Shown here piece after piece: positions 14,107-46,800 of a stretch of DNA of 64,000 bases (its first letter is position 1; the number at the start of each line of letters is the position of its first letter). The notes under the pieces were generated by a model. That model worked only from the letters and a program-made list of their open reading frames with translations. It ran no database searches and had not been told where the DNA came from. A program made the translations under genes and the position numbers. Origin of the DNA: Octopus bimaculoides (Eukaryota); assembly GCF_001194135.2 (NCBI RefSeq), contig NC_068984.1:24926999-24990998 (forward strand). The letters are read 5' to 3'.

Positions 14107-16181
14107 NNNNNNNNNNNNNNNNNNNNNNNNNNNNNNNNNNNNNNNNNNNNNNNNNNNNNNNNNNNNNNNNNNNNNNNNATATATATGACGGGCTTCTTTC
14201 AGTTTCTGTTTACCAAATCCACTCACAAGGCTTTGGTCAGCCCAAGGCTATAGTAGAAGACATTTGCCCAAGATGCTACGCAGTGGGACTGAACCCAGAA
14301 CCATGTGGTTGGTAAGCGAGCTACTTACCACACAGTCACTCCTGCGCCTAATAAATAAGATATATAATATTTGACACGTAAAAAGCACCATTTGAGTGCG
14401 ATCGTTTCCAGCTTCGCCTTACTGTTTTATCATCATCGTCATTTAACGTCCGCTTTCCATGCTAGCATGGGTTGGACGATTTGACTGAGGACTGGTGAAA
14501 CCGGATGGCAACACCAGCCTCCAATCTGATTTGGCAGAGTTTCTACAGCTGGATGCTCTTCCTAACGCCAACCACTCAGAGAGTGTAGTGGGTGCTTTTA
14601 CGTGTCACCCGCACAAAGGCCAGTCAGGCAGTAGTGGCAACGGCCACGCTCAAAATGGTGTATTTTATGTGCCACCCACACAAGAGCCAGTCCAGGGGCA
14701 CTGGCAACGATCTCGCTCGAAAGATTTTAGAAAAATACACTCATCATCGTTTTGAAGTCTATTTTTCTATGCTTGATTAAATCTAATGGAATTTGTTGAG
14801 GCAGATGTTTTTTGTGTCAGATGTCCTTCTTGTCCCCCAACCTTTAACTGGTTCAAAGCAAAGTTATATTGCTTCTTTTAAATAGATTGTATTAATTAAA
14901 AAAGTAAATTTACCTTAGTATCATAAATAAAGACTTCAATGTTCTTAAGAATTTCGCCATTTTCAAAGGTAAGTTCACCTTCTCCACCAAAATAATCAAC
15001 ACCAGCATGAGCTGTCATGTCCTTTGTCTTCCATTTTACACTGACATGTCCATCAGCTCCATTTGATCTTTTTACAGGAATTTTTACTTTCCGAGAGCTT
15101 TCAGTGACAAGAACACTTGGTTTGGTGAACTCCAAGACTCCAGGTTCTGAAATGTGAACAATTTGCTTTTGATCAAATAACAATGGAGAGTTTCATCAGA
15201 TTATGTATATAATAGATTCAATAAACCTTTGTATATTATATTATTTGTGTGCTACTGGGAAGAAGATAATTAACTAAGTAAGCATTTCATTAACTCTTGA
15301 TTTAAAAGAAGCTAAAGATTTTTGGAGTCTTATTTTTTTTTCAATGTTTTTCTTATGACTGCAAAAATTTTATTAAAATTTTTTCATGATTGACATTTTA
15401 TGAAACAGCAATAGATGAAAATCTAATCTTAAAACAGCTTTTAGATAAAAATATCAATGTGTATAACACAATGTATATACAAATGTAGAACAGTGCTGGT
15501 TGTGATATATTGTCTCAGAGAAACTTCTCTTAGCTTTTAAGTATTAATAATACAGAGCTCACTCAGAATGTCATTAGTAGTGTTTCAACCTCCTCGGTAA
15601 CAACCACACTCAGACACTCTGGACCAAGATGAAATCTTTGTTCCAATATGGCAGTCAGTAAACAAAACATTCTTTGGTATATGTGAAAGTTGGCCAGGTT
15701 AAAATTAAATCAATATACACACTTGAAGCAACATTACATTACAATAATGATGTATATATGACATAAGTTATATACAAACATAGAATCCTGCTTGCTGTGA
15801 AATTTTGTTTGAGAGAGGCTTCTTTTAAGAGACTCTGTATGTTAAAAACACAGAGCTGCAACAATCCCATCTATTATTCAGACAGTATATCTAACACGGC
15901 AATATCTTATCTGTCCTTCTATAGTATTTGAAGCAGTTTTGTTTGTTATTTCCAGCAGTTATTTCCACAAAGGCTCCCAGCTACCTTCTCTTTTGCCCAA
16001 AGGATACTTATGGCAGTCAAGGGCCAGTGAGAAATACATTTCTTGGCTATGGACACTATGCATGGTGAATCATCTTGTTTGTTGTTGACACAACGTTTTG
16101 GCTGATATACCCTCCAGCCTTCATCAGGTGTCTTGGGGGAATTTTGAACCTGGGTTCTCATTCCTAAGGTATTTTTCGATG

Positions 16182-22300: not shown

Positions 22301-25300
22301 AGTGTTTGTTGCAGGCCCTTACATTCTGAGTTCAAATCATGCTAAATCAACTTTGCCCTTCATCCAATGAAATAATATACCAATCAAGCACTGGTTAGTG
22401 GTACCAACTAACTACTTGTCCTCAAAATTGCTGGCCTTGTGCCAATATAAGAAACAAATATCTGGTCCCATATCAGAGTTTCCAATGACATTTGTTACAC
22501 CTGTTATTGATCTGATCCTCATTTCTGATGACTGTCATCATAGAATGGCTACTGTACTACAGTGTTCTAAGATAAGCTCATCATTTCCAAAGATTCACCA
22601 TCAGGTGGATATCTTACTTCACTAGAAGAAATTCAATGATAGTAACATCTAAATGTAGTTCAGTCAGATCTCCAGGCTTATCAAAGGAGGCTGGCCAGCA
22701 CAAATATGATACTGATGTCAAGAAATAATTTATTGACAGTGAGTTTCTTTTACAAAAAATATTATTTCAAATAGACAATTAGTCCAATTAAATGATGGAA
22801 TTAATAAAATAAAGAAATGACAATCAAAAGTAAATAGAAAGTACCTCAACTTTGCCAACTAATTACTATAAAGATATTTTGTTCTTGACCCATAGAACTC
22901 CATTAGACCTGTTACTCAGTTTCCATGGTTTATAAGTGACTGAGAATCACAACATTCTCCCTGAATGAACCACCAGTCTATTGCAGGGTTTAAAGGTAGC
23001 AATTCTGGAAGGAGGAGACATCAATTACATGGGGGCCAAGTACATCCTGAAAGGATGAAGAGTAGCGGTGACTACAACAATATTTAACTCAAAACAGAGA
23101 ATCAGTTGGAAAAATGCTCAACAGCATTTTTCTAATGCACTAACAATTCTACCAGCTCACCTCCTAATAAGGAAATATAAATAATATTGCTCTCCTGTTG
23201 GATAATCATGCCATTTCAATTCTGTATGCAGTACAGAAATTTCTATTATCTCCCATCATTGTATAGTCTGCATAGTCAGAAGCCTTCATATAATTTACTA
23301 TGTCACACTATGTTGCTGGAAGTGTTTGTTTATTAGAATGAAAGAATAACTTAACAAAAATGAACAGGTTTTATTCACACAGATGAAAGATCAAAACTCA
23401 AAAATCTTCCCCTTCTGATTCATAATTAAAGACATTTTATATATGAATATCTTCTGAAACCTGCAACAACTTTTCTTCCTTAGTCATATACCCTTTGCCA
23501 CTTTAGTGTGATAGGTAGATGTCTTAAAAAAGAATTAGATAGTTAAAGGATTCATATCATTGGGTAAGTTAATATATTTCTGTTGTTTAGGAATTTCAAG
23601 TAGGATATCAACAGAAATTATTAGAAAAGGAAATAGTCTTTTTAATGAAACATAGACATAAGCTGTAGATCATGTTGTGGAGAAAAAGATAATGAATTAA
23701 ATGGTGTTACAACATAGAATGCAAGGTTATTAATTAAGGTTCAAACCATACTGTGCAAATGTGCATACATGCTGAAGTAATATGATTAAAATATGCAAAA
23801 TATAATGTGATATAGAAATCCATGCAACATGTCAAGTTTGTTCTGGAAGAATCCAATGCTAAACCAAAATACATAAAGGAAACAGGCAAATTTTCTTTTA
23901 AAAATGGGTGTGTCATTAGGAAATGGGGTGTATTAAGAATGCCAGTAAAAAAATTCTTACTTTTAATTCACTTACCTGTGCACTGTCTCCATCAAAGAAA
24001 AATGGAATTGTGCCATAAAAATAAATTTATCAAGTCTCTCGGACAACCAAGGTTTCACCCACATAATCTCTTCCAAAAGATGAACTAGTACACTTAAAAG
24101 CTCCTACATTTTGTACACATCTGAACAAACTTCTGAGTTATCAAGTCAAAAAGAGCCTAAAGAAACATTTCATCAAGACTTTACTATTCATTATTCCACT
24201 CTCTTTAACCCTTTAGCATTCAGATTATTCTGTCAAATGTAAAGCTTATGTATTCACACCATGTAAAATTAATCTTGCATCATTTCATGGCTTTGAGATT
24301 TCAATTATGTGATTGTTTATTTTTAAAATGACACAATAAGGTAGCTATGAATGACCATATCTGACTAGTTTGAACATAAAACAGGTAGATTATTTTAGCC
24401 AGATATGGCCGGTTTAAGTACTAAAGGGTTAAAGTTAGACCAAATGAACAGATACTGATCTGGATTTTCTTACCCTAAAGCTCAATAACTAATTCATTTC
24501 ACAATCCAATGTTAAACTTTAGCTAAAAAGATAACTCATAACATTTGTCTCTAAAACATTTTATTGATGGGGCTTTTTTTTATGGAGCTTAAATTTCTCA
24601 GAGTTTATAACTGCTCCAAATACAAACCAAGAGTCACACTATCAGGGATAAGATAATTAAGTTTGCAGATGTATGGTCTAAGACCAGATAGCTTCTAAGT
24701 TCAAAGTTTCTGTAGTGCCAAGACAATCCACTTAGAATGCTTATCTAATGGGTAATATCTGCCAGACAGGGCAAATGAGAATGAACTCATATTCAAAGTG
24801 TGCTAGTAGTACACACCTTTACTGTTTCTAAATATAACACACTTTTTGTTTTTACTAAACATAGTATATTGTTATTTAAACACTAGTATTAGTCTTATAA
24901 AACAATATTCAAGTTATTTCATTCTCATGGTCAGTACGCTTCATTTCCACACCACTAAGAATAAAATATTTTCCTACTAATAAAATATATGCTGTAAAAT
25001 TGAAATTCATGACCCGTCACATGTAGCCTATTAACAAGCTTGCCTACAAGACACTTTAGCCATGAAAAAATAAAATTTACATGCATAAAAACAGATGACT
25101 GACAGAAGTATGTAATCTTTTTAGAGCACCCCAAAATACTGTACTAATTAGAAAGGAGCTATGAATTACAGAATTACATCATAGGGTGGTACAAAATAAC
25201 ATCAGGAAGTGTAAAATAATTACTTGTAGTAGTCCCATAGTTTAAGTGTTTATTGTACAGTATTAAGGGGACAGGGACACAAACACATGAATTAAACCAT

Positions 25301-28300
25301 TGCTTAGTTTTGAAACCAACAGTTTATTAATGACACTTTGTTTCAATCAACCCAGCTGAAAATACACATCACTAACTATTTCAAAACTAATTGGGTGATA
25401 ATATGAAAATGTAGATAAATGCAAAATTATATGAATTTGCAGGACCATTCTACCCATGCTGGCATGAAAATGATATAATTGTAACACATTATAAGAACAA
25501 AATAAAAAGATACAGTAAAACAGAATCAGGAAACTCGATTAATTATTGAGAAAAAGACAAGAATTATTTAAGAATTTGTTTGAAATGAAGGTCATTATGC
25601 AGTTCTTCTTTTGTTAAGTAGATGATTGCTCAATATTTTAATTAAGGTGTTTTATATAAAGAAGATAAATAATCAATTAAGCTTTTGTTATCTAGTTTAC
25701 TTTGAGTTAAATATTTGGAAGCAGACTTCAATTTATAAACTTATACAACAGTGCATTCTTCAAATAAATTCATTTATATATATATATGAGGTGGTGAGGC
25801 AAGACCTTCGTACATTGGGCCTCACCGAGGCGATGACTACGGACCGAGACCTTTGGAAATGGGCTGTGCGTGAGAAGACCCGGCAAGCCAAGTAAGATCG
25901 TTGCCAGTGCCCCTGGACTGGTTCTTGTGCGGGTGGCACATGAGATGCACCATTTTGAGCGTGGCCGTTGCCAGTACCGCCTGACTGGCTCCTGTAGGAT
26001 TTTCGAGCGAGATCGTTGCCAGTGCCCCTGGACTGGCTTGTGCGGGTGGCACATAAAAGACACCATTTCGAGCGTGGCCGTTTTCGTGCGGGTGACACGT
26101 AAAAGCACCCACTACACTCTCTGAGTGGTTGGCGTTAGGAAGGGCATCCAGCTGTAGAAACTCTGCCAAATCAGACTGGAGCCTGGTGTTGCCATCCGGT
26201 TTCACCAGTCCTCAGTCAAATCGTCCAACCCATGCTAGCATGGAAAGCGGACGTTAAACGATGATGATGATGATGATATATATATATATATATATATACA
26301 GTATTAAATTCATAAAAGAGGAGAAACAAAGTTATATAAAGTTCATGCTTTTCTCAAGAACAATTATGTAGAAAATGGCTGCAATCATGAATGGAAACAG
26401 GTTTTCAAACTGACTTTATAAATTACTTAACAAGGTTTGTCACACTCAATTAAAACATGGTTAAATATACATTTATAAGCTTTTAATGCTTAAACGGTGG
26501 CTTATACTAAACTTCTTTCAATACATTAGTTAAAAGCTAAGTGCAGTCATCTATTTAACAGATAATCCTCCAGAAAACAGTTTTTAACCTAGAAAGAGCC
26601 TGATACAAATAATAGTTGCATATCTTTTTGTTGATCACAAACTTGATTTAAAATAAAATGATAAAAATAGACTGAAGATAATCATAAAAGGTCATTTCGG
26701 TGAAATGATATGATAACTACAACATATATATACGTGTGCGCGCATATGTGAGTTAACATGCTTACCTGTGGATTATCCAACTGTTATGCAAAAAGGAAAT
26801 AATCAAAATAAGGATTAACTATAAAACTTTACAAACAATATATCAATGAAATATATTGATGAAATAAAGCAGTATCTTTCACCCTTTTTCAATAAAAGCA
26901 TTCAAAGACATATCAATGAATGCCACTCTTTACTGTTTATTCTCTCACAACCTTTTCAAAAATTATTTCCATTTTACCTAATATTGTAAGTTTATTAATG
27001 TAATGAGCCTAAAAATCTGGGTTTCTTGCTGTACCCAGTAGTTCCTGACAGGGCTCTTTAACCCATTTGTTACTATATTTCTGTTGAAATGTGGTACCTT
27101 TTGCTTTAACTAATTTCTAAAATGATGAAGAATTTAGTAAAATAATTTTGGTTGATGTTTGGAACATAAACTAATAAGAATTTGGATGGAAGATTTGGAT
27201 CACTTCAAAATAAGAAGTTTGTGTCATAGAACCAGTGATGGTCTGTGGGTTGGTTTTGAAAAGGTTATATGTCAGGGCACTGTAGCAGAGGAATAATTTC
27301 ATATTGAACTCATAAGAATTTAAAATGCACCTTGTTAATATATGCTACAAATAGCTTGCTGGTTTAATATCATTTAATCATAAAGTCCATGTTCAATTCT
27401 AAAATGAGTTGGATGATTTGACAGGATTCAATGAACCCAAGAACTGCATTATGATCCAGTGCCTGCTTTGGTATGGTATATATGACTGGATGCCCTTCTC
27501 CACACCAATTATTTTTCAGTATGTACTGATTACTTTTTTCATAGCAGCAGCACTACTGAAGTTATCATGCAGCTCACAAAACACTATGAACCCTGGTAGG
27601 TAACATTATGCTAGGAAATGAGGGCTAAATGTATGAGAAAAAGGGCTAGAGCAGAACAGGTCTGTTGCTGTAAATGAGCTACATAACTACTCACAGGTTT
27701 TTACTGGAACACAGCTTTATTGCTGAGTAAGGGTGGTAAGCAAGTGTCTAAAGAGATAGAATTAGGGAAGAGAGTAGGAAGTGGTAGTTTAATGTGAGAG
27801 AAAGGATGAGTTAGGAAGTGATAAGAATAGTGGGTTGAGTCAGAGATTTAGTTACAGGTAAGGAGATTGGTGCATGAATGAGAGATAAGGTGATGGCGAA
27901 AAACCAGAGAATATCCTCAAGATAACACACCTAAGAGAACATGGTAAAAAAGAATTGGGGACAGTGGGTAAAGGCTATCAGAACGAAAGCCCTCTTAGTC
28001 GAGCATCCTGATTTGGAAGGATAGACAAAGTGGGGGCAGCAAGATATAGGTGATGGAGGTGGCAGGGTTGCAGATATTTAATCTTTTTGATACCAAACTG
28101 GCTGAAACTGCCTCTGGCTCTGTAGTACAAATGTCTTGTTTTCAAAAGTTCTGAATTAAAATCTTCCACCAAACCTTAGTCAAAATTTATGTTCCTAGCA
28201 CTAGCTTAATGATAACTAAGTTATTTTGTTAAATTCTTTGCTATATTTAAAATTAATTGAAAGAAACAACAGAAATATAGTAACAAAAGGGTTAATATGA

Positions 28301-30592
28301 GAGGTTTTGGGTTTCCTTTTTTATTATGAATATCATAGTACAAGGAGTAGAAGAGGAGACAATGGGTAAATGTGAGGGTATATAATGGGCAGTAACATCC
28401 AGGTATTATCTTTTTTTTAGAGTTTATATATATATATATTTTAGACTAAAGCAGTAAACATGTTGGGTATTCTAGTTGATATCTGATCTAAAAACAATGC
28501 TGAGTTCAAGTTTGGTACCTTGTTTTCTGAGTTTACATTCTGATGCACCTTTTGTCTTCCTGGAGGTGAGAAAATATATTTGTCAGGTACATCTTTACAC
28601 TGTGAAATTTATTAACTCTAAATTAATTAAAAGTTGATAAAATGGCCTCTAGACTTATCTGTGTGATTCAGTGGTGAACATGAATAATCTAAATCAATAT
28701 ATGCAAATATACACTAGTGAAATTTGGTTAATGAGCATCTATTTATTGATAAATATATCAAATAACAGCTGTTGCACCCCAGAATATCTATAATATTTTG
28801 AGAAAAAAATAATAAAAACTTGGGAAATTGCATAACAGCTGTTTTATACCTCAAAATAACCATGATTTAACTATTATATACAAAACTATGTAAAAACAAC
28901 TATACTCTAGAACTACTAGTGACACCTAGTGAAGGGTTGACTACTTAATGTGCCATATTACATATATATATCTGTATGGGTGTGAAATGGAATTATCAAT
29001 AAATTACAAAATGAAATTATTACAGTTTTTGACTGTGTTATCTTTTATAGTACCATGCAAACTAGCATTATAAACAGTTTCTTATAATGAAGGTAGGAAG
29101 AAAATGTAAGAGGAAGGGGTAAGATTATAGCAGAAAATTGTGAAGCAGCTCAAAAGGTTGTGGAACCTCTGTACCAGAACAATAGTTGTGAACAGCAGTG
29201 AGAAACCATTTTATTACCAAAGATGTATAGAAAGTCCAAAAGAACCCACCAGGTATAGCAGCCCTGATAAAATAATGAAATTTTCTTTAAATTTACAAAT
29301 TTGTAGGCATGCGACTTATATTAATTTACTGTTTTTGGTCAGAAGATTCAAACCAATTTTTCATATGGATTTTCAGAGACTTTTCAGTGAGCAGTTTCAA
29401 ATATGAATGCATGCGAAATTTCACCCTTGAGCACCAGAGAACATATATAGAAGTTCTACAACAGAGGAGTTAAAATACTGTTACCATAGACTAAAAACGC
29501 ACTTTGTTAACAGATTTATCTCAATGAAGGAACATTTACTTTAGGGGTGTCAAATTCATTTGGCTTTATGGGCCAAGAAGAAACATAAAATAGATCTAGC
29601 AGATCAGATAGGGACAATTATTGTTAAAAACCCTATTCATAATGTTAACCAAAATAAATGGATAAAAAGGGCCAATATACCTTACAATTTTATTAATAAC
29701 AAATGAAAAGAATATGAGATGTTAGCAAACTGTGTAGAGGTGTGTGTTTATATTATGTATATGTATATGTATGTGTGTGTGTGCGTGTGTTATTAGATAG
29801 GAGTCTGTAGTAGGCAAACAGAGTTAGAAAGTGTCCAAACGAATGCATACAGCTCTTGGGAAGAGCAATACTTGATAGGAAACTTGCAGTGTTTCAGGGT
29901 CACATCTTACAAGATGGATTCATAATCTTTTCAATTAGTTGAGATAACAAAAGAATTTCTAAAGTACACTGATTTGATGAATCAGAACCAGTTTTCATCA
30001 CAACTCTGGACACATGCTAGCAATATATATTTCACAAAATATCCTTACATAAACAAAAAACCAAAAAACAAAGTTTGGTTAGAGAGTATTTTGATTTGAT
30101 AGAATGACGTGTCTCTCTAAGAACTCAATCCAAATCCGATTGGGATTGAGTGAGGTTCATTAGTCCAGGGTCAATAAAATATATTTTTTTTTTAGCTTTA
30201 ATTTTTTACTTGTTTCACTCATTGGACTGTGGCCATGTTGGGGCATTACCTTGAAGGGATTTAGTCAAACAATTTGCCCCTTGTACTTATTTCTGGGTGT
30301 GGTACTTATTTTATCAGCCTCTTTTGCTGAAGGACTAGGTTATGTGTATATAAACAAACCAACACCAGTTATCAAGGTGACGGTGGGAGACAAACACACA
30401 CGCATTTAAATATATATATAACAAGCTTCTTTCAGTTTTCATCTACCAAATCTACTCACAAGGTTCTGGTCAGTTCAGGGCTATATTAGAAGACACTTGC
30501 CCAAGGTGTCATGCAGTGGGATTAAACCCAGAACCATGTGGTTATAAGGCAAGTTTTTTTTTACCACACAGTCATGCCTACATATATATGCC

Positions 30593-30631
<39 letters not shown>

Positions 30632-32075
30632 TATAAACAGATATATGTAGCATGGCTGTGTGGTAAAAAGTTTACTTTCCACATGGTGGTCCTGGGTTCG
30701 GTCCTACTGCCTTGTATCTTGTGCAAGTGTTTTCTACTATAACCCTAGGCTAACCAAAGCCTTGTGAGTGGATTTAGTGGACAGAAACTGAAAGAAGTCA
30801 GTCATGTATGGGTGTCTATATCTTTGTGATGTCTCACCACCACTTGAAACTGGTGTTGGTGTATACGCTTCCCATAACAGTTTGGCAAAAGAGATTGGTA
30901 TAATAAGTGCCAGGCTTAACAAAAGTACTGAGATCGATTCATTGAACTAAAGATTCCAGGCAATGCCCCAGCATGGCCACAATTGAAGGACTGAAACAAG
31001 TAAAATATATGAGAGAATTGCAGTTGGCCAAGTGTCATACTATCAGTCAACAATGCATATCCTGTGCCAAATCTATGTTGTGTCTATGACTAAGATTACG
31101 TATGTGTGTGTGTGAGGCAATGACAGAACTTTGGCATCACGTTGTGCTTAAGAAGACTCATCAAGCCAAGCAAAATCACAGTCATGGCAGATACTGGTGT
31201 CATGTAAATGGCACTCATGCTGGTGGCACATAAAAGCACCCATTACACTCTCAAGAGTGGTTGGCGTTAGAAATGGCATCCAACTGTAGAAAACCATGTC
31301 CAATCAGACTGGAGTCTAGTGCAGCCTTCCAGCTTACCAGCCCTAATCAAACCGTCCACCCATGCAAGCATGTAGAACAGACATTAAATGATGAGGATGA
31401 TATATATACACACACACACACACACATAGATAACACTCACACATACACATTCATTCACACAGACACACACAGTTTATTCAGACTAATGCAATAACCTTTT
31501 ACTATGGAGTTTTGCTGGCATGTTGGTTCCTTGAACAGAAAAAAGATGGGAAAACTCCACAGTAACAAGTGACTAAATCAGCCAAAGAAAATTCTATGGT
31601 ATTTTTTTTTCTTCTTTTATTCCTTGAATCCATGGATATATATATATGTTATAAAGGGTCTTTATATAACTGAATATCCAACACAAGTTAGGCAACACAA
31701 CAAATTTATTGAAATTTTTAGGTGAACAGCAGCATCAGTGTCTAATAAATTTAAGTTGTAAGAATATATCAAAGGTTTACAGTTTCATTCAATTTGCAAA
31801 GTACCTATTTAGGGAATTTCATCTTAGTTTCTCTGGCTCATACAGTTTCTCGTACAGAGATTCTAGGTGTAATTTATACAGTCAAATACAAGAAAGAAAT
31901 TAAGTAAAAGGCAAAGGAGAAAGAGGAACTGAAGTTGCCAAAATAACAGGATTGTTCAGTTCCTCTGCAACCAATTTATGAAGTAATACTTAGCAGATAT
32001 TGTAAGAAATAAGATAAGGCGTGGCAGTTTTTGTATCTGTTTATCTACATCTAAAGTGTGGGTGTGTGATTAATG

Positions 32076-32110
<35 letters not shown>

Positions 32111-33626
32111 CTTTGCATGTGTATATAAATGTGCATGTTTACTTTTCACCTATTACCTGAACTGGAGGTAATAACTTGCATGTGTGAGTAGTTCTGTGTG
32201 TGAGTAGATGTATGTGTGTGTGTGTGTGCTTGTGTGTATGAGTAGGTGTGTGCCTGTGTGTATGAGTAGGTGTGTGCATGTGTGTGTGTGTGTATGTGTG
32301 TAGTTTGCTTAATATGCATGGCTGCTATATTGCTGACATCCTTCCTTAGTTAATTCCAGAAATTCCAAACATCTGACTGAGAACTAGTATAATATTCATA
32401 GGATAACACTATAATGACACTATCTCCCACCACCACTTACAAATAAATAAATGAATAAATAAATAAATAAATAGAAAAGTGGGTGCCATAGGAGAATGTA
32501 TGTAGTAACAGCCTAATTAATTTAAACAGTAACAAACTAGGCAGAAAGTAAAGCAACTGGTTGTCAACTTCACAGAATACCTTTCAACTAGATGACACTT
32601 ACTCTAGACTTCTTTCTGTTTCTCAACCATATTTCCTTTTAATACACATTACTATTCTACTTTATCAATCTGATTTCTCTGGTATCTTTTACTTGTTTTA
32701 GACACTGGACGACCCCAGTATTTCTTTTTAAGCCTGGTACTCATCATCATCATCATCGTCGTCGTTGTTTAACGTCCACTTTCCATGCTAGCATGGGTTG
32801 GACGATTTGACTGAGGACTGGTGAAACCAGAGGGCTACACCAGGCTCCAACCTGATTTGGCAGAGTTTCTACAGCTGGATGCCCTTCCTAATGCCAACCA
32901 CTCAGAGAGTGTAGTGGGTGCTTTTACATGCCACCAGCACGAAGGCCAGTCAGGTGGTCATCATATCAATCCCCTTTTGCCAAACTACTAAGTTATGGGA
33001 TGTAACCAACCAACACTGCTTTTCAAATGGAGGTGGGACAAAAACACACACACACACACACACATGTTGGGCTTCTTTCAGTTTCCTCTTACTAAATCCT
33101 TTATTGAATCCACTCTCAAGACTTCGGTTGGCCCAGGACTATAGTTGAAGACACTTAACCAAGAGGCACATAGCAGGACTGAACATGGAACCATGTGGTT
33201 GAGAAACTCACTTCTTATTACATAGCAGTGCCTGCATCTTTTTTTTTCCTTCTTAAATTAAAGTTAAACATTCATACCCTCACATACCCTGCCACTGTGG
33301 TTGAGTAAAGCTTAAAAATACCACCACCTCTAATTCACATCTCTTCCTCTCAACTTATATCGTCAGACAAATTTTAAAGTAATAAAACACTAAAATGTCT
33401 TGTTGAAACAACAAAAAAGAAAAGTTTACTTTGTCATCGTTGTTGTTGAGTGACCTCCCATTAATAACAACTCGAGGAAGTCTCATAGCATTCATTTAAT
33501 CAACCAGATGTTGAATGTTTAGGAGCATCTCAGATGTCCAGAATTCTAGACATACCACATATCTACACATGCATATATCTGTCTGTACATGCACTCATCT
33601 TCATCTGCACACACATATACTTAGCC

Positions 33627-33665
<39 letters not shown>

Positions 33666-35171
33666 GGAGAGAGATCGAGAGAGAGAGATCAGATGTATAT
33701 GCCCACACACATGTTGGCTTTGGTTGATAATCTAATATTCTAATTAATGAATTTATTCCGTGTTTATCCAAACTTTATAAGTCACATTTATCCTGAAATT
33801 GAGAAACTTAAAACATTTGCTCATCTTAAAAGCTATAAATAGAAATGTATCCATGACAAAATAAATTGAGGTGGAGTTTCCCCTTATTATAACTGAAATG
33901 CTATGTACTGTAGGATTAGGGAAATCTCTTAGCAAGCCCATTTTGTGACCCAATTTTGATTCCTTCAAGGCAAGAATCCACTTGACTTAATTACTGAAAA
34001 AGAGGAAAGAATATCATTCATTCTCTTTTTATAGTATTGAGCTGAACTAAAACTTTTATATTAATCACTGACAGTCTAATGAGATTTTCTTTTTCTTTTT
34101 AAGGCATGGCTGTGTGGTTAAGCAGCTCACTTTGCAGTTATGTGGTTTGGGGTTCAATCCCACTGTGCACCACCTTGGGTGAGTGTCTTCCATTCAATGT
34201 CTTGTGAGTGAATTTAGTAGCCAGAAGTTGTATGGAAGCCTATCACATTTATGTGTTTGTGTGTGTGTATGTGTGTATGACTCTCTTAAGGTAGCCAAAT
34301 GCCTAGTCATCTGAGCTCAAATTCTGTTGAGGTCGACTTTACCTTTCATCCTTTCAGGGTCAATAAATTAAGTACCAATTGAGCACTGAGGTCGATGTAA
34401 TCTACTATCCCCCTCCCCACAAATTTCAGGCTTTGTGCCTTTAATAGAAAGGATTATTATCATCATTCTTGCAGAATTGTTAACACACCAGATAAAATGC
34501 TAAGGGACATTTCTTCTGACTCTTTACATTCAAATTCCATTGAGGTTGATTTTACCTTTTTATCCTTACAAGGGTTGATAAAATATGTACCAGCTGAACA
34601 CTGGGGTCGATGTTATCTATTCGATTTTCTCTTCACAAAATTTAAAAACTTGTATTAATAGCAGAAAGAATTATTATTTAAATTTGCAATAAAATAGTAG
34701 ATGGGTGTTGTGAACATGATGCTAGCTTCCAGACAGCTGAATTTGTGACCCAGTCTCAGCTCTCAGGTGAAGCCATTTCTCTGAGATTGTTAATGCTCTT
34801 CAGAAAACATGAATAATGTACACTTATTTCTTTCTCTGTAAATATGAGATCTACTTAATTAGGAAATCTTTATATTATTTTAAATGAAATTTATAAAGAG
34901 GAAAATTACCACTTGACGATGAGTAAGAGTGTGGATGTTAGAACTGGTAAGCTTATTTCTTAGGTTGAAGAAACAGTTTTTATCTACTCAAAATGTGTCA
35001 AATACAACAGAACAGACTTCGTGATTAAGCAAGTGCTTGTTGTAGAATATGTTTTCAAACCAAATACTAAATCTACTTAACTGAGCCAACAAGGGTGTTG
35101 CCACAAGATGACTCAATATGCTAAAAATATCAAAATTCTCTCAATTCACTATATCTACCTATCTGTCTATC

Positions 35172-35205
<34 letters not shown>

Positions 35206-35851
35206 GTCATATTTTATCATGTTTCCTATAGTTACATGGGATTTAATGGGATCTAACAGATTAGAGGACCGTTATAGTCCAATATCTGCTTTGGCATGAT
35301 TTCTACCACTGAATGCCATTCCTAAAGTCAACCACTTTACAGAGTGTACTGGGTACTTTTTTGTGCCACCAGCAGGATATGTAATTTAATGAATACAGGA
35401 GTTATACTTCCAATTTCATGCTTGGATAGTACAGAAATTGTATACTATACAGGCTTGTATTGCATATCATGCACAATCTGACAATCAATCAGACTTAAAT
35501 ATAACATACTATGCCAGATCATGCATAGTATACTATACAACCGCATAAAGTTATTGCACTATTCAAAAAAATTTTCCAAGAGTTCATTTAACTCCTGTAT
35601 TTATAAATTGTATGTTACCCAAACCTGAAATGCGCATATTAAATGATTTCCAAATATCACTATTTGATTTTACTTCATTATTATAACTTGATGCTAATAC
35701 AAACTAACCAGTCTAGACTCCACTTATGCAGATATTATAACAATGATTAAAAGTAGTTTGTTATGTTTGACTCAAGTTGAAAATTCTGATAGTGTGTACT
35801 ACTTCTTAGCATAACAAACATGCACGCATTCAGGTGCAGGCGTGCGTGCGT

Positions 35852-35895
<44 letters not shown>

Positions 35896-36052
35896 NNNNN
35901 NNNNNNNNNNNNNNNNNNNNNNNNNNNNNNNNNNNNNNNNNNNNNNNNNNNNNNNNNNNNNNNNNNNNNNNNNNNNNNNNNNNNNNNNNNNNNNNNNNNN
36001 NNNNNNNNNNNNNNNNNNNNNNNNNNNNNNNNNNNNNNNNNNNNNNNNNNNN

Positions 36053-36089
<37 letters not shown>

Positions 36090-36213
36090 CCTTTTCTCTT
36101 AGACTTTCCTCTGTCTCGTTTCCTTCCCTGAATGTCTGCTAATACTTTGCATGTACCATGTCCTTGCTTTGTTGTTTTTTTCTTGTGTTTTTCTTCATTT
36201 TTTTAATATTAAT

Positions 36214-36248
<35 letters not shown>

Positions 36249-36467
36249 AAATATATGTCTGGTCATAGAGAGACCAAAACTCCCTAAAACCTGAGTTGAA
36301 GAAATATATGCCTTCGGCTTTACAGTCTGACAAGTCACCCATGGGGCTAAGCCCTTTATGAATGCAAAACCATTAGTCACTATAACCGACATAGACTTAA
36401 CTACTTATAAATACATTGATGTTCTATGCTTTAGAGTGTGATTCTTTTTCAGATATATGACACACTG

Positions 36468-36515
<48 letters not shown>

Positions 36516-37121
36516 TCATCAGTTTAATGCCTACTTTTCTATGCTTGCATGGATCACTTGGAATTTGTTCAAGATTTTCTACAGCTGGATGCACTTCCTG
36601 TTTCCAATTCCCACACATTTATTTCTCACTAAGATAATATTTACCCATGCTGAGCCATGTACTTCACAGAAGACTAGAAATGCACAACATCACTTGTATG
36701 ACTGACTATCACTTACAACCGCTACGGGATGTCAAGACACTGGTGCACAATCACACACATTCTTTCATCTGTTTAACATCAGTTGTTCCATGGCTTGGAC
36801 AGCAATTATTTTGAGGAAGGATTTATAGGCTGGGTACTCTTCTAAACACTAATATCCACTTGTTTTTTAAAGGATTTTTATCAGAGGGAAAGCTGGGTTT
36901 TTTTTTCTTTCAAGCCTTCATTGATCTATTTTTATTCCTCTTGTGGATGGAGTTTAAGTGGTAGCAATGTAGGTAGTGTAGAATTGTGATATGTAAGAAT
37001 AATCTTTAGCGATTATAATGGTTAGATGTCATGGAAATAGTCAATAAATTTAAATTAACAAATAACAGCTAATTAAAATTAAGTTAAGCCTTTTCAATAG
37101 ATGTATGTATAGAAGGCATAC

Positions 37122-37152
<31 letters not shown>

Positions 37153-39469
37153 CATACATACATACATAAGGAAAGAAAAAAAGAACTAAAAGAAAGAGAA
37201 AATAAAGAACAAAAGAAAAGGAAAGAAAGAAGGAAAGTGAGTAAGGAAGAAAGTCTGATTTTGTAAGAGTGTCGAGAAAAGGACAAAAAGGACAAAAAAT
37301 ATTCAATTATAATTGTAATGAGGTTATATTTGGTTTAAGAAATTAAGGGTTGATTACATTTATTATAATTTATAATCATTCAAGTATATATATGATGCAG
37401 GTGTAAGGTTAGATTTATATGCAAGCACAGATCAAGTTTGGTAGATTGTGTTGAGAGGTCACATCCAAGCAAATCTTATATTGACTTAAGAGGTTTGGTT
37501 TAAAATTCTGGCCATTGTACAGGATCAGGAAATATTAGTATTTGATGCTTTTATATATATTGCTACTTGAAAGAATGTGTGTATGTAACCGCAAAATTTA
37601 TATTCATTCCTTCATCTTAACATACATTTATGTAAATGAAAACATGAAGCTATTTGTATTATGGTGTATATACATGCCTGTGCATGGATATTATATACAT
37701 ACACACACACACACACAAACAGGAATATATATACAATCATCATCATTGTTATTATTGCTTTAACAGCCATTTTTCCATGATTGCAAAGGTTTAGTGTGAA
37801 TGCCAGATGCATTTCTGCCATATGGGCATTATCAATAGCATGTACTCAAAGCCAACCACATGCTGTGGCTAAATATCATTGGGCAGTTGTTCACAACCCC
37901 CAACAATTGTTCATTTATTGCTTTCCTCTATATCAGCGGGGTCAAATTTATATAATATATATATATAATATATATATATAATATATATATATAATATATA
38001 TACATATAATATATATATATATATATATACATATAATATATATATATATATATATACATATAATATATATATATATATATATANNNNNNNNNNNNNNNNN
38101 NNNNNNNNNNNNNNNNNNNNNNNNNNNNNNNNNNNNNNNNNNNNNNNNNNNNNNNNNNNNNNNNNNNNNNNNNNNNNNNNNNNNNNNNNNNNNNNNNNNN
38201 NNNNNNNNNNNNNNNNNNNNNNNNNNNNNNNNNNNNNNNNNNNNNNNNNNNNNNNNNNNNNNNNNNNNNNNNNNNNNNNNNNNNNNNNNNNNNNNNNNNN
38301 NNNNNNNNNNNNNNNNNNNNNNNNNNNNNNNNNNNNNNNNNNNNNNNNNNNNNNNNNNNNNNNNNNNNNNNNNNNNNNNNNNNNNNNNNNNNNNNNNNNN
38401 NNNNNNNNNNNNNNNNNNNNNNNNNNNNNNNNNNNNNNNNNNNNNNNNNNNNNNNNNNNNNNNNNNNNNNNNNNNNNNNNNNNNNNNNNNNNNNNNNNNN
38501 NNNNNNNNNNNNNNNNNNNNNNNNNNNNNNNNNNNNNNNNNNNNNNNNNNNNNNNNNNNNNNNNNNNNNNNNNNNNNNNNNNNNNNNNNATACTTATATA
38601 AATATATATATATATACTTATATAAATATATATATATACTTATATAAATATATATATATACTTATATAAATATATATATATATACTTATATAAATATATA
38701 TATATATACTTATATAAGTATATATATTATATATGTATACATATATACTTATATACATATATAAATATATATATATACTTATATAAGTATATATATTATA
38801 TATGTATACATATATACTTATATACATATATATATATATATTTATTCATGCTTATATGTATGTACGCACACACGCACACATGAATGTATATATAATTATA
38901 TATACGCACATGGAATGAGGTAATTAGGTGCAGACGTTTGAATGATGGTGATTTGGCATGGCTGATTGGGCACTGAGCCCGATTTGGCAATGGCTTTTTA
39001 GCAATAGTACTTTTTGGCACTGGAGGCAAACATACACAGCATACACACAGAAACATACATTTACAGGCAGACAGGGAGGTGTTTGTGACAATTGGTGTCA
39101 CTTAATACATCTTATTGCTTCTGTTTCTCTCCATGTTTTCTGTATACATTACCAACATTTATATTCACTGTCTATTCTACTTTATCAAAGATGTATAGCA
39201 ATACATTGGCGGATTTTTTTTTTTTTTTCCATGTTCTGTCAACGTTTTACTAATCATTATATGCAGCATGCTAAACAAACTTGTGTACTTCAGTAGTTGT
39301 GATTATAAGTTAATTGTCAACTGTTGTAATTAAATGTTTTACACTTCTAAATGGTCCCTGGGACAAAATGTCTGATGTCAAGTAAGTCACCATCAAAGCA
39401 GCAATTCCAAATAGGTGGGGCCAAAACAGCCATGCCAAAATGCCTCAGACCTATATATATAATATATAA

Positions 39470-39526
<57 letters not shown>

Positions 39527-40746
39527 CAGACACTCAAACATATATATATATATATATGACAGGCTTCTTTCAGTTTCTGCCTACCAAATCCACTCACAAG
39601 GCTTTGGTCAGCCCGAGGCTATAGTAGAAAACACTTGCCTGAGGTGTCACACAGTGGGACTGAACCCAGAACCATGTGGTTGGTAAGCAAGCTACTTTCC
39701 ACACAGCCACTCTGTGCCTATATATATATATATATATAAAATGTTTCTTTGTATTTGTTTTTATAAATTTGTATATATATAATGTTTCTTTGTATTAATT
39801 TTTATATATGTGGTGTAGTCAAAAAGTATCTAAGCTTGATTGTTTTTGCACAAAATAATAATGCTTGAGCAAAAACTGTGTGGGTATTAGGTGGCTGCAT
39901 CCTTCCTGAGCATGCACAAAAACTTTCATTGTGCCAGTCACCCACAATGATGCGTTATGTATAGACATGAAAAGTATGCTGTGCGATTTTTGTTTTAGTC
40001 AAGATGACTGAGCACATTGAGCAAAGATACTGTATCAAATTCTGCCAAAAACTTGGTGATATGCAAGCCCAGACTATCAAGAAGATTCAGAAGACTTTTG
40101 GAGATGATGCTATGTGAAAAACACAAATAAAGCAGTGGTACAACCAGTTCAAAGTTGGCCACACCTCAGTGGACAGTGAGCCATGAATGGGCACCACAAG
40201 GTCAGATAATTAACAAAGAATATTACCTCAGGGTTCTTCATTGCCTTCATGAAGCTATGCAGCAAAAGCAACCTGACCTGTGGGCAGCAAAAAACTGGCA
40301 ACTCCACCATGACAAAGCACCCACTCATTCTGCCCACATTGCCCAAGCATTCCTCATCAAGCAAAATACATCACTTGTTCATCAGGCTTCCTTCTCCCCA
40401 GACTTGGTTCCATGCTACTTTTGGCTATTCCCAAAGCTAAAAAGTACTCAAAGGGAGAAGATTTGAGTCAATAGGGGACATTAAGCAAAATTCGATGACA
40501 CAACTCTACAGCATCCTAAAGTGTGATTTCCAAAAATGTTTCCAGCAGTGGCAGAAGTGTGTAGACTCCCAAAGTGAATACTTTGAAGGAGACTAAATCA
40601 AGACGATGAGTTTTTTTCATATTGCTTGTTTTGGGGTCAAAGGTTGGATACTTTTTGACTACACTTCATATTTGTGTGTATATATATATATATATTTCCT
40701 TGTATTTGCTTTTGCATATTTATGTGCATGTATATGTGTGTATGTA

Positions 40747-40804
<58 letters not shown>

Positions 40805-43800
40805 AAGCAATAGACATGCACACATATATGTACACTTATATACACAGAAAGAGACACACATAAACAGATACACAGATAAACAGATACACCCAATTATACA
40901 TATGTACGGATATGCACTATATAGATATTGAGAAGTCCTTTATGAAATAGTAAAAGGAAAAGAAAATCTCCCCTTTAGAGAAAATGGAAACGGTGGTATC
41001 AGTCAACCAAAATGGGTGAAATATAGTTAAATATTTCCAGACGCTTACCTTGGCTGAAAGATCATCCCGAATCTGCATTTAATAAAAGATAAGAAAATTA
41101 AGATAACAATGTGAAGCATCCTACATAATATTCAATTTATAAATTTGAAAGAACAGAGTGCCATGCATTATTCTGCAATAAAGAACATCACACACACAGA
41201 GTTACTTATATGCTTAAAAATCAAAGATAATTTGTCACTAAAGTAGTATGATACTAATTAGATGATATTTATGATACTGGAAAGAGCCTTGTAGGAAAGC
41301 TCTTGCTACCAAGTCATCTCCAACTTTGAAGCAGCCAGGATTGACACTAATAAAAATAATAGACCCCAGTATAGAGTTGGGTCTAATCTGTCCCCAAATG
41401 GTGGAAACCACTACTACAACAGATCTGCAAATCCTAGGTGGGTCTGAATTCCCACACGAGATGACATGCCAATACATCAAAGAACACTGTATAGCTGTGT
41501 CCTGTTGAATCTTCAGTTTGTCAACGTGACAAGTGAGTCCAATAATGAAACTAAGTACAGAACCATCTAAGAATAAGCTGATGACAATTGGTGACTAAAT
41601 TTATTGAAATAAAGTGTTACTGAAAATATTGAAAAATGATTCAATTCTAATGTTGGAATTAACAGTTATAACATTGTGTTAAAATTATGTTCTAATAGGT
41701 TAATTACCTAATTTTCATGTTCATTAAAAGTGAAACAAACATTGTATTATTTTACTGTATCTTAGAACTTTTCTAATCTATAGTCTTGTGTGTGTGTGTT
41801 TTTTTAAACATAAAAATACTTTTAGCTCATTATCAGAAAAACAATTACTTCTGAAGGTGCATGACTTAGTGGTTGTGAGTTCAATTCCCAATGGTACATA
41901 GTGCCCTTGAGCAAAATACTTTATTTCATGTTGCTGCAGTCCACTCAGCTAGCAAAAATGTGTGGTACCTGTAATTTACTTTGTAAGTTAATAGAATTGG
42001 TAGAATGTGATTAACCTTGTCACATTCTGAGTCTTGCTGAATCATCCTGAGATCTACATTAAGGGTACAGATGTCTGTGGAGTGCTCAGCCATTTGCATG
42101 TTAATTTCACAAGCAGACTGTTCCATTCACCAAACCAATCAGAACCCTCATCGTTGTAAATAATGGAGTTCCAGAAGATTACTATTTCTGAACTATTTAT
42201 CATCAAATGTGTACTGTTTTAGATATTCACATTAATTGTAAAGGAGACAAATGAATCATTTAAGCTATGTTTTAGAAGCATGAGTACAGAACAGATTAAC
42301 TATAACAAACATTTAATATAAATACTAAGTAAGTTTCAATTCAATAGAGAAACCAAAAGATTATTATCAAAATAAGATGTTAATAAGAAAGTTTTATAAA
42401 CAACTTATAGGACATCATGGTAACAGATACCTAATGAGTTATGGACTTAACCTAGCTGCAAGTCTCCTACATCATAAGCATCATTATAGTCTGATTTCCT
42501 TATCTTTCTTTTGAGTCCAAAGAACATTTATGAGAGTAAGACATATATATAACATTCTGCTCTCAGTAAGACATACAGAACATCAGATATCTTGGTTCAT
42601 AAGCCTTGTTCAAAGAATGTGTTTGATGTAATATAATTTTTGTAATTTTCAGTTTTAATGATATTGCTCCATTCCACATATCTGGCAGTTATTACAGAAC
42701 AGAAGGTCATGATGAAACATCTCATCACTTTGGACAAAATTGACTACATAAGAAATATCAGAAAAGAAGCATTAAGCCAACTTCTTTTTTTTTATGCAAT
42801 GTGGCATTATGTCTCATGCTAAAGCTAACTTTAACCCATCCCGGATGATAATTGACTGAAGAATATTAGTTATTGCCAATCTGTCAGTAAAAGAAAACAC
42901 AGTTACCATGTTACCAAGTCTTGTCAATGAGCTAGATTTCATCTCACCCTTTGTTCGCCTTACACCAGTGTTTCAGTGTAAAATATTTTTGGAATTGTCA
43001 TGATACAAGCTACTAGCTACTAGTAGTAGTTCTAATATTCTCTATGAACTATGCCTAACAACCAGCACTTATTTTTCAGGTGCCTTTTGCAGAGACCACT
43101 TTGTGCAAGCATTCAGAACAATTCTCTATACACCTATATTTTTGTAGCATATGTTCAACCTGAACATTAACTATATCAACCATACCGCTCTGGGAGAAAT
43201 CTGCAGAGATCTTGAGTTCTTCTCCTCATTCTCTGTTCAAATTGTAAAAGAAAAAAAGAAAAGAAAAGAAAATGCTCAAACATTCAAGACCAAATAAAAA
43301 TGGTTTATATAAGCTTGTACTTTCTATAGAATGAAGTTCCAGTGAAAGCCTAAAATATTAACTTTAGTTGTTAGATCTCAACCCCCTCTATTAATAGTTG
43401 TTAGTGAGAAATATGTTACAATCTCTGAAAAATAACTTTCAGATTAAACAAAACTGAAAATAAACAGAAATATAACCAATATAGACTTGATAACAACAAT
43501 ATTGTAAAAATTCATTAAATTATTGATAACAAATTCAAAATAAAATGAATATTTTAGATTGGAAAACATTTCTTTATAAATCTAAAATGTAAAACATACT
43601 TTCCTATGTCTACTACCAGCCTGAAATCAATAAACAGAAAAAAAAGAAAGAAAAAAACTACATAAAATATGGAAAGTATGGTATATACATACATTTATGG
43701 AACCTGTGAGAAATTATATTATATATAAATGCACACACACAGAAATTACACAATTGTATGATAGAGCAATATGATAAAAAATGAAAGGGCAACAGACTAC

Positions 43801-46800
43801 AAAGATAGTAAAAAAATGTTTAAATGATCCTCAATGAGAAATAAAAGATTAGTATCGGATCTGTTTTAAAGAAGAGAATTATATAAAATTCATTTGTAAT
43901 TTCTCCACTCTGAAAATTCTAAAGATATTCTGAGATAGTCAGATAAGTTCCCAGATTTTATTCCCAGTTGTAGTTCACTCACTTCATTTACATTATCAAT
44001 GTTTTAAGAATAGTTGAGTTCTACAATCTCTATTTCTTGCTTTCTTGAAAATCCTAAAGGAGGTGCCTGTCACCCAAAGAAATCAAGTGAGAAACATTTA
44101 GTTCCCCATCAGTAGGGGAACTAAATGGCAAGCTACATTACATCTAAAAGTGAACATGATTAAAAATAATATTCAACTCATTCATTTAATGTTACTCCTA
44201 ATTCCTCTGTGTTGTGACAAGAGAAGGAAGAAGTCTACATACACTAAGTGATTGCTAAATCATTATTCACTGATTTCTCACATAAATACTTATTCAAAGG
44301 CATATCTAAAACTGAAGGGAAATAAGATTGTATGGTGTTTCCAAGAGTAATTGAAATAATGAGCAAAGTGAACTAATTGCTCAGAACTGAAACTAGTTTA
44401 TATTCTTGGCTTATTGAAAGCTTACCTCTAGCCTGTAATATTTAACAAACCAGTTAAAATATATTTAAAATTCTCAAATTCCATTAGTAAAATTTTAAAA
44501 AATAACTAACCCTAACCACTCTCTACATTCATTAAACTTAAAACAAGCATGCAGCAGTTTCCATAAGCACAAGCTAATGTGGTCAATATTGGTTTCTTAG
44601 TAACAAAGTCAGTTTTAATAATATAATCAGTAATATTACAAACAACATATATAACTGGAATTTATCTTGCTAGCCCTGCAAAATAAAGGGAAAATAAGCA
44701 AGATTTCATCCCAGAATATAAGTGGATAAAATTAAATACTGTGAAGATTTTCTACAGTTTCTGCAAAATATACTGCAAACTTCAATAATGGAAAAATGAA
44801 AATGCAGTTATCATCGGCAGAATTAGTTGATATGAACTGCTTTGCAGCATTTAGTTTTCTCCAGCTCCATTCTGAATATGAATTGTGCTATTAAATTTTT
44901 CTTCCATCCTTCAAAGGTAAAAAAAAAAAAAAAAAAAAAGGATCCACACAATGCCCTGGAATGAACTGAGTCAACTATATTACTTTCCTACAAACATTGA
45001 CTCCATTCTTAAGAAACCAATATTATAATAATTGTGGCATTATTTAAATTCTTTTCTTGAAAAGCAAAATAAAAAAAAAAACATATATAAAACATGTTTA
45101 ACATCAAGTGATGGCAAAATTTTGAAACAGTAATTTCTGGCACGATTCACACTAAACAGTTTTCATAAATTTTCTTTCTCTTGTAATGACATTATTTTAA
45201 CTGGTTTCAACTAGTTGGCATGGCCGTGCTGGCACATCACATGCTGCATTAACTTTTGAAAAGAAACTTTGATTACTGAAGTCAACAAACAAGGAGTAAA
45301 TAAGAAACATCAAGTTAATTATCTAGGTTACCTCTTTGAAAGCTTCCATAACTACTGGCGTAAGTTTCTGACCACCAGTCAGAGTACGATTGGCATTAAT
45401 ACGGTACCATCCTCTGCCATGGCTCTGACGTTCAGCAAGGGTTGCTGCAGCTAAACGACCAGCGTCTGAATCAGTAATATCTCGTGTACGAGCAAGGTCC
45501 TATAAAAATTCAACAAATAGATAAAACTATACAATCAGTGGAAATAGTTGTTTGAACATGAATGAGTTAAGAAATGGGATTAAACATCAAATTTATCCAA
45601 ATTATGCAAATGTAACAATTGGTTTGAGAATGAGCTGTAATTATGTTACATCTTTCACATTCTTCAATACTAAACCCCACTCAGTTTAGGGCTCTTGTTT
45701 TGTGAGTACTTGGTAACCTCACTAGTGCTGGTGCCACATTTAAAGCACACAATACACTTTGTAAAATGACTGGCATTAGGAAGGGTATCTAGCTATAGAA
45801 ACCATGCCAGAGCAGGTACTGGAGATCAGTGTAGCCTTGTTGGTTTCTATTGGACTATCCATCCTACATCAACATGGTAAAAGGAGCATCAAATGATGCA
45901 AAAAGAAGAAATGCTATTGGTTGAAAGTATAAAATATCAAGAGAGTATGAGATATCAGCAAGCTTTTTACTTCCTTTTTCTTTAACTCTTTTGATACCAA
46001 CCAATCTGCCCAGGGATGCTTCTGGTTCTTTGACATAAAACTGCCTGTTTCAGAATGTTCATATTTAGATTTTAAAATTTCAGTGATTAATTTTATAAAA
46101 AATTCTTTTCTTAAGTAATATTCTTGAAACCAATTCAATGTAGAAGTAAGTGTAAAAGATATTTTACTAAATGCACTAAATTCTTGATTTTGTTTTCAAA
46201 ACTAATTCAAAAGCAAAATTTTAAACTTCTATTTTAGAATATACTGCTTTTCTATTATATTTTATTTTGTCTGATCTCATACATATTAACATTTTTATAC
46301 ATTATTATAAGTGGGATGGTCCTTATAAATTTTACTATGGCATTTGTCTTTACAACAGTTAGACTACAGAGAAATAGAAACTGTCTAGGTTTGCATTACA
46401 GTAACTGTAACAAAATTTTAACTCAACCATTTATGGGATCGGCATATTAACCTTATGGCAATGTTGCTTAGAAAATATTTTGTTTTAAATTTCATTGCAT
46501 GTTTATTCTTACTAATAACTCTTTTTCTGATAATTTTTTTTTTTTTCAAATTTTAGAATTTGGCTTAAGCCATTCCTCGCTGTATTTCTAACAAAAGTTG
46601 CCATCTATGTGTTCCAATTAAATCTGGAAATAATCAAGAAATTGATGGGATTTAAAAAAAAAAAAGTAACTAGTTCCTTTAATTATTAAGCAAGTTTTTG
46701 AAACAAACTTGTGAAATGTGGGAGATATAAATACCTTTAAAAATGGATAGTTTTATATAAAAAAAAAAAGACAAAGAAGCAATCTCAGAAGGGCTGGTAT

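Follow-up and report, generated by a model that had tools for sequence, protein, structure and literature searches.

Alternatively used cassette microexons very probably vary the linker ahead of CBD1 in a cephalopod Na+/Ca2+ exchanger

The 64,000 nucleotides (nt) of the Octopus bimaculoides genome analysed here (the window; contig NC_068984.1, positions 24,926,999 to 24,990,998) carry, on the minus strand, most of a gene for a Na+/Ca2+ exchanger (NCX) of the SLC8 type, which RefSeq names 'sodium/calcium exchanger 3' and which extends from beyond 63770 down to its stop codon at 7624. The encoded protein of 824-855 residues has the defining NCX arrangement, with two Na_Ca_ex membrane repeats around a loop that holds two Calx-beta domains (Pfam, isoform X4: Na_Ca_ex 3.2e-37 and Calx-beta 1.4e-40, each in two stretches), and it shares 50-60% identity with annotated molluscan and arthropod NCX proteins. 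Na+/Ca2+ exchangers govern calcium clearance in neurons and muscle, and it was in the squid axon, the classical preparation, that their regulation was discovered. Our subject is a 24,460-nt intron of this gene (45331 to 20872), phase 0 at both ends, which lies directly before the exon that starts the first Ca2+-binding domain (CBD1) and harbours three microexons. These and the two flanking constitutive exons are listed here, in window coordinates and with a slash at each splice junction.

45332 to 45499, minus strand: constitutive exon 5' of the host intron, 168 nt, encoding DLARTRD...VVMEAFKE, ending in phase 0, donor GAG/gtaacc
43600 to 43620, minus strand: cassette microexon 1, 21 nt, AGSRHRK, tgatttcag/GCTGGTAGTAGACATAGGAAA/gtatgt, acceptor without a nearby TGC
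41049 to 41072, minus strand: cassette microexon 2, 24 nt, IRDDLSAK, ...ttattaaatgcag/ATTCGGGATGATCTTTCAGCCAAG/gtaagcgt, acceptor ending in aaatgcag
26766 to 26780, minus strand: cassette microexon 3, 15 nt, LDNPQ, ...cctttttgcataacag/TTGGATAATCCACAG/gtaagcat, acceptor tttttgcataacag
20678 to 20871, minus strand: constitutive exon 3' of the host intron, 194 nt, beginning cag/CTGCATGAG (LHEELKLP) and containing VVEFTA...VQV, the start of CBD1, acceptor in phase 0

All three short exons are no longer than 27 nt, bounded by AG and GT, a multiple of three in length within a phase-0 intron, and located in single-copy sequence. The 24-nt and 15-nt exons have GTAAGC donors, lengths divisible by three and no stop codon in frame 0; their donors follow the consensus MAG/GTAAG, and the 21-nt exon has the weaker GTATGT. 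A sequence-only reading of the window had proposed these two exons as a second microexon set in the gene, citing their GTAAGC donors, their fit to the phase-0 intron, the lack of in-frame stops, and TGC trinucleotides at -10 of one acceptor, at -8 of another in the preceding region and overlapping the CAG of a third. Each of these statements proved correct on inspection of the sequence, and both members of the set are borne out by the evidence below, but the set has three members, since the 21-nt exon at 43620-43600 (AGSRHRK) had been overlooked.

Strong support for the exons comes from their exact representation in annotated proteins. When the exons of the window are joined with the microexons that each isoform requires, the coding sequences match ten O. 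bimaculoides isoforms residue for residue from VWNDT to the stop, among them XP_014786863.1 (isoform X4) and XP_052822922.1, and these isoforms belong to a cluster that also contains eight proteins of O. sinensis and five of O. vulgaris. The isoforms differ exactly by the exons described here, whose cassette status is thus already recorded in the RefSeq models; being in public gene models, the exons are not new. The combinations of the second set that we find are nested: none of the three, the 24-nt exon alone, the 24-nt and 15-nt exons together, or all three (21+24+15). The 21-nt exon, encoding AGSRHRK before IRDDLSAK, is present in O. bimaculoides isoforms X1, X2, X3 and X5, while O. sinensis isoforms carry none, the 24-nt exon, or 24+15, and one O. 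vulgaris protein carries 24+15. The annotated cephalopod proteins were retrieved with a 704-residue query spliced from the evident exons of the window. Two shorter, junction-spanning queries of 134 and 319 residues, identical to database proteins, did not return them, which reflects a limit of the word index and not biology, so that negatives of this kind are no proof of absence.

Transcript evidence extends the observation beyond octopuses. In 10 listed RNA-seq runs (SRR8281665 to SRR8281694), Logan contigs 2.7-3.4 kb in length read ...TTCAAAGAG/CTTTATGGGGACCTGTCTATAAAG/CTGGATAATCCACAG/CTTTATGAT..., and those with full-length open reading frames encode FKE/LYGDLSIK/LDNPQ/LYDDLK, with both microexons joined between the flanking exons. 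In other runs, contigs of this gene pass from one flanking exon straight to the other. We assign these contigs to the cuttlefish Sepia esculenta because identical proteins occur in runs that PMC9538352 assigns to juveniles of this species. Inclusion and skipping are therefore both on record, in the RefSeq isoforms of O. bimaculoides and O. sinensis with and without the exons and in the Sepia contigs with and without 24+15. The alternative use in the phase-0 intron that had been proposed from the sequence is thus upheld by isoforms of three Octopus species as well as by the cuttlefish.

The third line of evidence is conservation. For comparison we used the orthologous O. sinensis gene, which is free of gaps, and that of Argonauta hians, in which the intron spans 11 kb. 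A blastn comparison of the octopus and Argonauta introns yields only three collinear islands, at 41180-41019, 31831-31775 and 26802-26761, and two of the three are the microexons, as follows.

41019 to 41180, minus strand: conserved block at the 24-nt exon, with 77% identity to Argonauta across 164 nt; the donor GTAAGCGTCT, the pyrimidine tract and a TGCATG (41167-41162) all fall inside it
26761 to 26802, minus strand: conserved block at the 15-nt exon, 42 nt, 100% identical to Argonauta hians, made up of the exon with the 22 intron nt before it, among them the TGC at -10, and with GTAAG after it

The orthologues of the 24-nt exon encode IQDELSAK in O. sinensis and O. vulgaris, LQDHLSMK in the Argonauta genome (aaaattcag/CTTCAGGATCACCTTTCCATGAAG/gtaagcg) and LYGDLSIK in Sepia esculenta RNA, so that length, frame and the pattern [IL]x[DG]xLSxK are kept. 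The 15-nt exon is identical at 15/15 positions in three octopods and at 14/15 in Sepia, the one change being synonymous. Splice sites, length and frame of both exons are kept in Argonauta, and length and frame in four species; for these two exons, the exon and its flanks are conserved above the intron background, which for the 21-nt exon is not the case outside Octopus. Both exons are intact in the Argonauta genome, and the one Argonauta isoform retrieved is without them. The comparison shows that position, length and frame of the 24-nt and 15-nt exons have been retained since the common ancestor of octopuses and cuttlefish, and retention over this span implies a selected function.

Two observations touch on these islands. 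Compared with the opening 24 nt of the constitutive exon that follows the intron (20871-20848), the 24-nt microexon agrees at 16/24 positions in Sepia, 10/24 in Argonauta and 7-8/24 in Octopus. In Sepia, 12 of the first 15 nt are shared (LYGDLSIK vs LYDDLKMN; contigs L002 and L010). This likeness hints that the microexon may have been born by duplication of the 5' end of that exon. The third island (31775-31831, minus strand; 24264-24320 in the Argonauta locus and about 40320-40380 in the O. sinensis locus) is alignable between Octopus and Argonauta over about 130 nt. It ends in a donor-like sequence, TAG/GTACTT in Octopus and ATG/GTGAGT in Argonauta, and has stop codons in frame 0; a poison exon and a regulatory element are both conceivable.

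Where the encoded residues fall in the protein can be estimated from a model. We built an AlphaFold2 model of isoform X4 from 62 homologues, in which the predicted local distance difference test (pLDDT) score is below 50 at residues 314-365; the microexon residues are 331-343, and the strands of CBD1 begin at 373. In an alignment to the human NCX1 chain determined by cryo-electron microscopy (8sgi), the insert stretch has no counterpart. The model and the alignment support a position of the inserts in the linker between the cytoplasmic helices that follow the fifth transmembrane segment (TM5) and CBD1, as the sequence-only reading had placed them.

Taken together, we put at about 0.9 the probability that the window gene has three frame-preserving cassette microexons in the intron before CBD1, used alternatively and altering the linker ahead of that domain. 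Several points weigh against this reading. The RefSeq models are computational predictions, and their basis in RNA-seq is our own inference. The 21-nt exon is seen in O. bimaculoides models only: it is intact in the O. sinensis genome (AGSRYRE) and absent from the O. sinensis isoforms retrieved, and no Argonauta homologue of it was found, so that this exon may be young or little used. A contig of a more distant mollusc (ENA ERZ26168041), with a 2.4-kb intron at the same position and phase, showed no homologous microexon, a negative that carries little weight because the same comparison also missed exons certain to exist in the preceding intron. Finally, the low-confidence segment of the structural model fits disorder and is no proof of it.

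Depending on the isoform, the linker gains 0, 8, 13 or 20 residues. For the function of the inserts we propose the following. Being placed in a flexible linker, the inserts would change its length and charge and would add a conserved serine within D-L-S-x-K, and they may in this way tune how Ca2+ binding to CBD1 is relayed to the transport domain. Inclusion would vary by tissue. The serine of D-L-S-x-K also fits a minimal S-x-K/R kinase motif, which we regard as a lead only.

How inclusion is controlled is a separate question. One account is a neuron-specific programme in which a putative eMIC-form Srrm234 protein binds UGC just 5' of the 3' splice site and drives inclusion. Targets of the eMIC or SRRM3/4 are marked, according to published work, by a UGC near the 3' splice site, pyrimidine tracts rich in UCUC, branch points that lie distally and, in vertebrates, strong donors (10.1101/2024.09.17.613571; 10.1101/2021.02.24.432780), and the likeness of the octopus exons to such neural microexons is evident in part: all three lie inside the 3-27 nt size range and preserve the frame, the 24-nt and 15-nt exons are deeply conserved with their flanks and have consensus 5' splice sites, and at the 15-nt exon a pyrimidine tract, a UGC and the AG follow one another in agreement with the published SRRM3/4 and eMIC cis code (10.1101/2024.09.17.613571; 10.1101/2021.02.24.432780), with the UGC at -10 kept in three octopods. 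The pattern of the Sepia contigs would also fit. Those that bear the inserts come from one 2018 project only (SRR82816xx), and none belongs to the runs listed for the two most frequent isoforms without inserts, some of these runs being from Sepia esculenta juveniles (PMC9538352). This indicates that inclusion depends on the type of sample.

The UGC argument itself, however, discriminates poorly. Its positions relative to the acceptors are -10 (26780), -8 (53048) and -5 (41072), the last of these copies overlapping the CAG. Yet 3/6 microexons have a TGC no more than 20 nt from the AG, as do 1/10 of the other exon acceptors shown and 18/76 decoy acceptors of the same AT-rich intron, so that its presence barely separates exons from decoys. 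The 21-nt exon lacks a TGC; at the 24-nt exon it is not conserved, Argonauta having TTCAG instead; and the sole conserved copy, at the 15-nt exon, sits in a 42-nt block that is wholly invariant. The AG-free zones of about 40-50 nt at the microexons are no longer than those at the constitutive exons of the gene. Neither PMC9068888, nor 10.64898/2026.09.05.749416, nor the fly eMIC paper makes a statement on the splicing of this gene or its microexons. We consider control by an eMIC programme plausible but doubtful. A sequence-only reading was able to detect true 15-nt exons, and the UGC argument contributed little to this.

A second account invokes other factors, for example an Rbfox-type protein acting on UGCAUG, or a pattern tied to tissue or development and not particular to the nervous system. 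O. bimaculoides, O. sinensis and Argonauta share a TGCATG (41167-41162, minus strand) located about 95 nt 5' of the 24-nt exon, inside the conserved block CAGAAnAATGCATGGnA, and at a density of 0.63 TGCATG per kb in this intron the chance of finding one within 100 nt is about 6%. A GCATG is also present in Octopus at +4 of the donor of the 15-nt exon, and the nested combinations of inclusion suggest graded control. Against this stands that only one Rbfox-type motif is conserved, the GCATG 3' of the 15-nt exon not being kept in Argonauta, and that in other animals an Rbfox site upstream of an exon usually represses it, so that the conserved site alone would not explain inclusion. We judge this account rather unlikely as the explanation of inclusion.

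Two further accounts concern the nature of the exons themselves. Because the intron is 24.5 kb long and strong exon donors lie deep inside it, the microexons could be stepping stones that, in a manner akin to recursive splicing, help to remove a long intron and have no role in the protein. We reject this account as very improbable. The exon starts ATTCGG, TTGGAT and GCTGGT would not rebuild a 5' splice site (GURAGU), and the exons are kept in mature coding transcripts. Moreover, LDNPQ and [IL]x[DG]xLSxK are conserved and the lengths are held at 15 and 24 nt, and the two exons persist in Argonauta, where the intron measures just 11 kb.

That the exons might be chance pseudo-exons or propagated annotation errors has some basis in the sequence statistics. 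With a loose filter (YAG acceptor, at least 14/20 pyrimidines, GTRAG donor, length 3-51 nt), the sense intron yields 9 candidates, of which 3 keep the frame and contain no stop, against 5 and 2 on the antisense strand and a mean of 1.06 in-frame candidates in dinucleotide shuffles. By this filter the pattern is not above chance. The consensus donor MAG/GTAAG, in contrast, occurs at 3 sites in the sense intron, and 2/3 have a good in-frame acceptor; at a per-position probability of 0.03, two of three would be expected with a probability of about 0.003, a value obtained with a filter picked after the candidates were seen. Since the answer of the chance models changes with the strictness of the filter, our verdict rests on annotation, transcripts and conservation instead, and on these the account is refuted and its truth vanishingly improbable: the ten isoform matches are exact, the de novo cuttlefish RNA contigs contain both the 24-nt and the 15-nt exon, both also appear in each of the separately made annotations for three Octopus species and are intact in Argonauta DNA, and the exons with their splice sites make up two of the three collinear islands, with length and frame kept in four species.

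Comparison with known systems places the cassette microexons in a wider context. In vertebrate NCX1 (SLC8A1), exons A-F are likewise small exons in the large cytoplasmic regulatory loop that are used in tissue-specific combinations (PMC2217150). They differ from the octopus exons in lying in the CBD2 region and in including a mutually exclusive pair, whereas the octopus exons precede CBD1 and are all cassettes; the octopus region that matches A-F is short and does not vary among the isoforms retrieved. Thus, while vertebrate NCX1 is diversified by small CBD2 exons, this cephalopod paralogue varies the linker before CBD1 and the segment after TM5.

Inserts at corresponding positions also occur in other protostomes. 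NCX isoforms of the abalone Haliotis differ by LADRK (5 residues) between ...FQD and LYERIQL (P0017 and P0019 vs P0015), which matches the octopus 15-nt exon in position and size, and a Calx-like isoform of the prawn Macrobrachium rosenbergii has RLSQCLHS (8 residues) between ...KLKV and VYNAMNE (P0121 vs P0103), which matches the 24-nt exon. Neither is recognisably homologous to the cephalopod inserts, the match being one of size and protein alignment position. The insert site before CBD1 may be an old or recurrent splicing hotspot. The fuller proposition, that the linker before CBD1 is a protostome hotspot for tuning NCX by microexons (5- and 8-residue inserts in cephalopods, abalone and prawn) and that these are switched on in cephalopod neurons by the eMIC of Srrm234, we regard as tentative and, as a whole, improbable. 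If it were true, invertebrate nervous systems would adjust the Ca2+ regulation of the exchanger separately from the CBD2 exons of vertebrates.

The window gene is also to be distinguished from the squid exchanger NCX-SQ1 (He et al. 1998, PMC2217150). Both are cephalopod Na+/Ca2+ exchangers, and NCX-SQ1 is expressed in the optic lobe and stellate ganglion; the paper gives it 892 residues and describes conserved DDD motifs and a region resembling XIP, and reverse transcription PCR over its CBD2 splice region found no variants. According to the same paper, the DDD motifs are conserved in all NCX proteins. In contrast, the protein of the window gene has 824-855 residues, and at the DDD sites the gene and the listed molluscan orthologues have IIDDF and INDDE (window 18106-17874 and 15146-14914; CBD1 and the start of CBD2). 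The segment after TM5 differs from the basic XIP-like stretch. The differences in length, after TM5 and at the DDD sites mark the window gene as a paralogue other than NCX-SQ1, and the replaced motifs together with the post-TM5 segment point to a distinct NCX paralogue in which the regulatory sites may differ.

In the preceding region, upstream of the host intron, the gene carries a first set of cassette microexons and the constitutive exon that changes the phase.

60745-60731, minus strand: first-set cassette microexon, phase 1, APEAK, 15 nt
58500-58486, minus strand: first-set cassette microexon, phase 1, VDAPK, 15 nt
53048-53031, minus strand: first-set cassette microexon, phase 1, DKQLGK, 18 nt
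48486-48413, minus strand: constitutive 74-nt exon, which shifts the phase from 1 to 0

The splice sites of VDAPK are intact in the O. bimaculoides genome; among the isoforms retrieved, it is present only in those of O. sinensis and not in those of O. bimaculoides. The up to 32 in-frame combinations once counted for the two sets do not hold: the window has six cassette microexons, which give 64 theoretical combinations, ten O. bimaculoides proteins are on record, and the second set is seen in nested combinations only.

Two assembly gaps interrupt the host intron, both between the 24-nt and the 15-nt microexon.

38084 to 38589, no strand: assembly gap in the host intron, with (TA)n-rich repeats on both sides
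35896 to 36052, no strand: assembly gap in the host intron, bordered by (TA)n on one side and (TG)n on the other, where O. sinensis has no microsatellite

The nearest microexons are 2,460 nt and 9,116 nt away, and neither gap meets any exon or reading frame. On the O. sinensis chromosome, which has no gaps, the flanks of both gaps align with order and orientation unchanged, and the counterparts there of about 260 and 90 nt indicate that the gap lengths are unreliable; the O. sinensis isoforms have no additional coding exon in the host intron. The collinear flanks and the ten exact isoform matches, built from exons on either side, support continuity and frame across both gaps.

At the Rfam gathering thresholds no RNA family was found across the whole window, and a scan of metagenome contigs for relatives found nothing. 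A transposon-derived origin of the microexons was considered and rejected, their flanks being single copy. A mariner-like transposase fragment is present at 40155-40466 (plus strand), about 600 nt from the 24-nt exon (Pfam Transposase_1, 22.1 bits, just below the cut-off). The introns also contain dispersed members of a short repeat family, at 26113-26274 and for example at 25837-26205, 19442-19816 and 14495-14755, with copies in the Argonauta intron as well.

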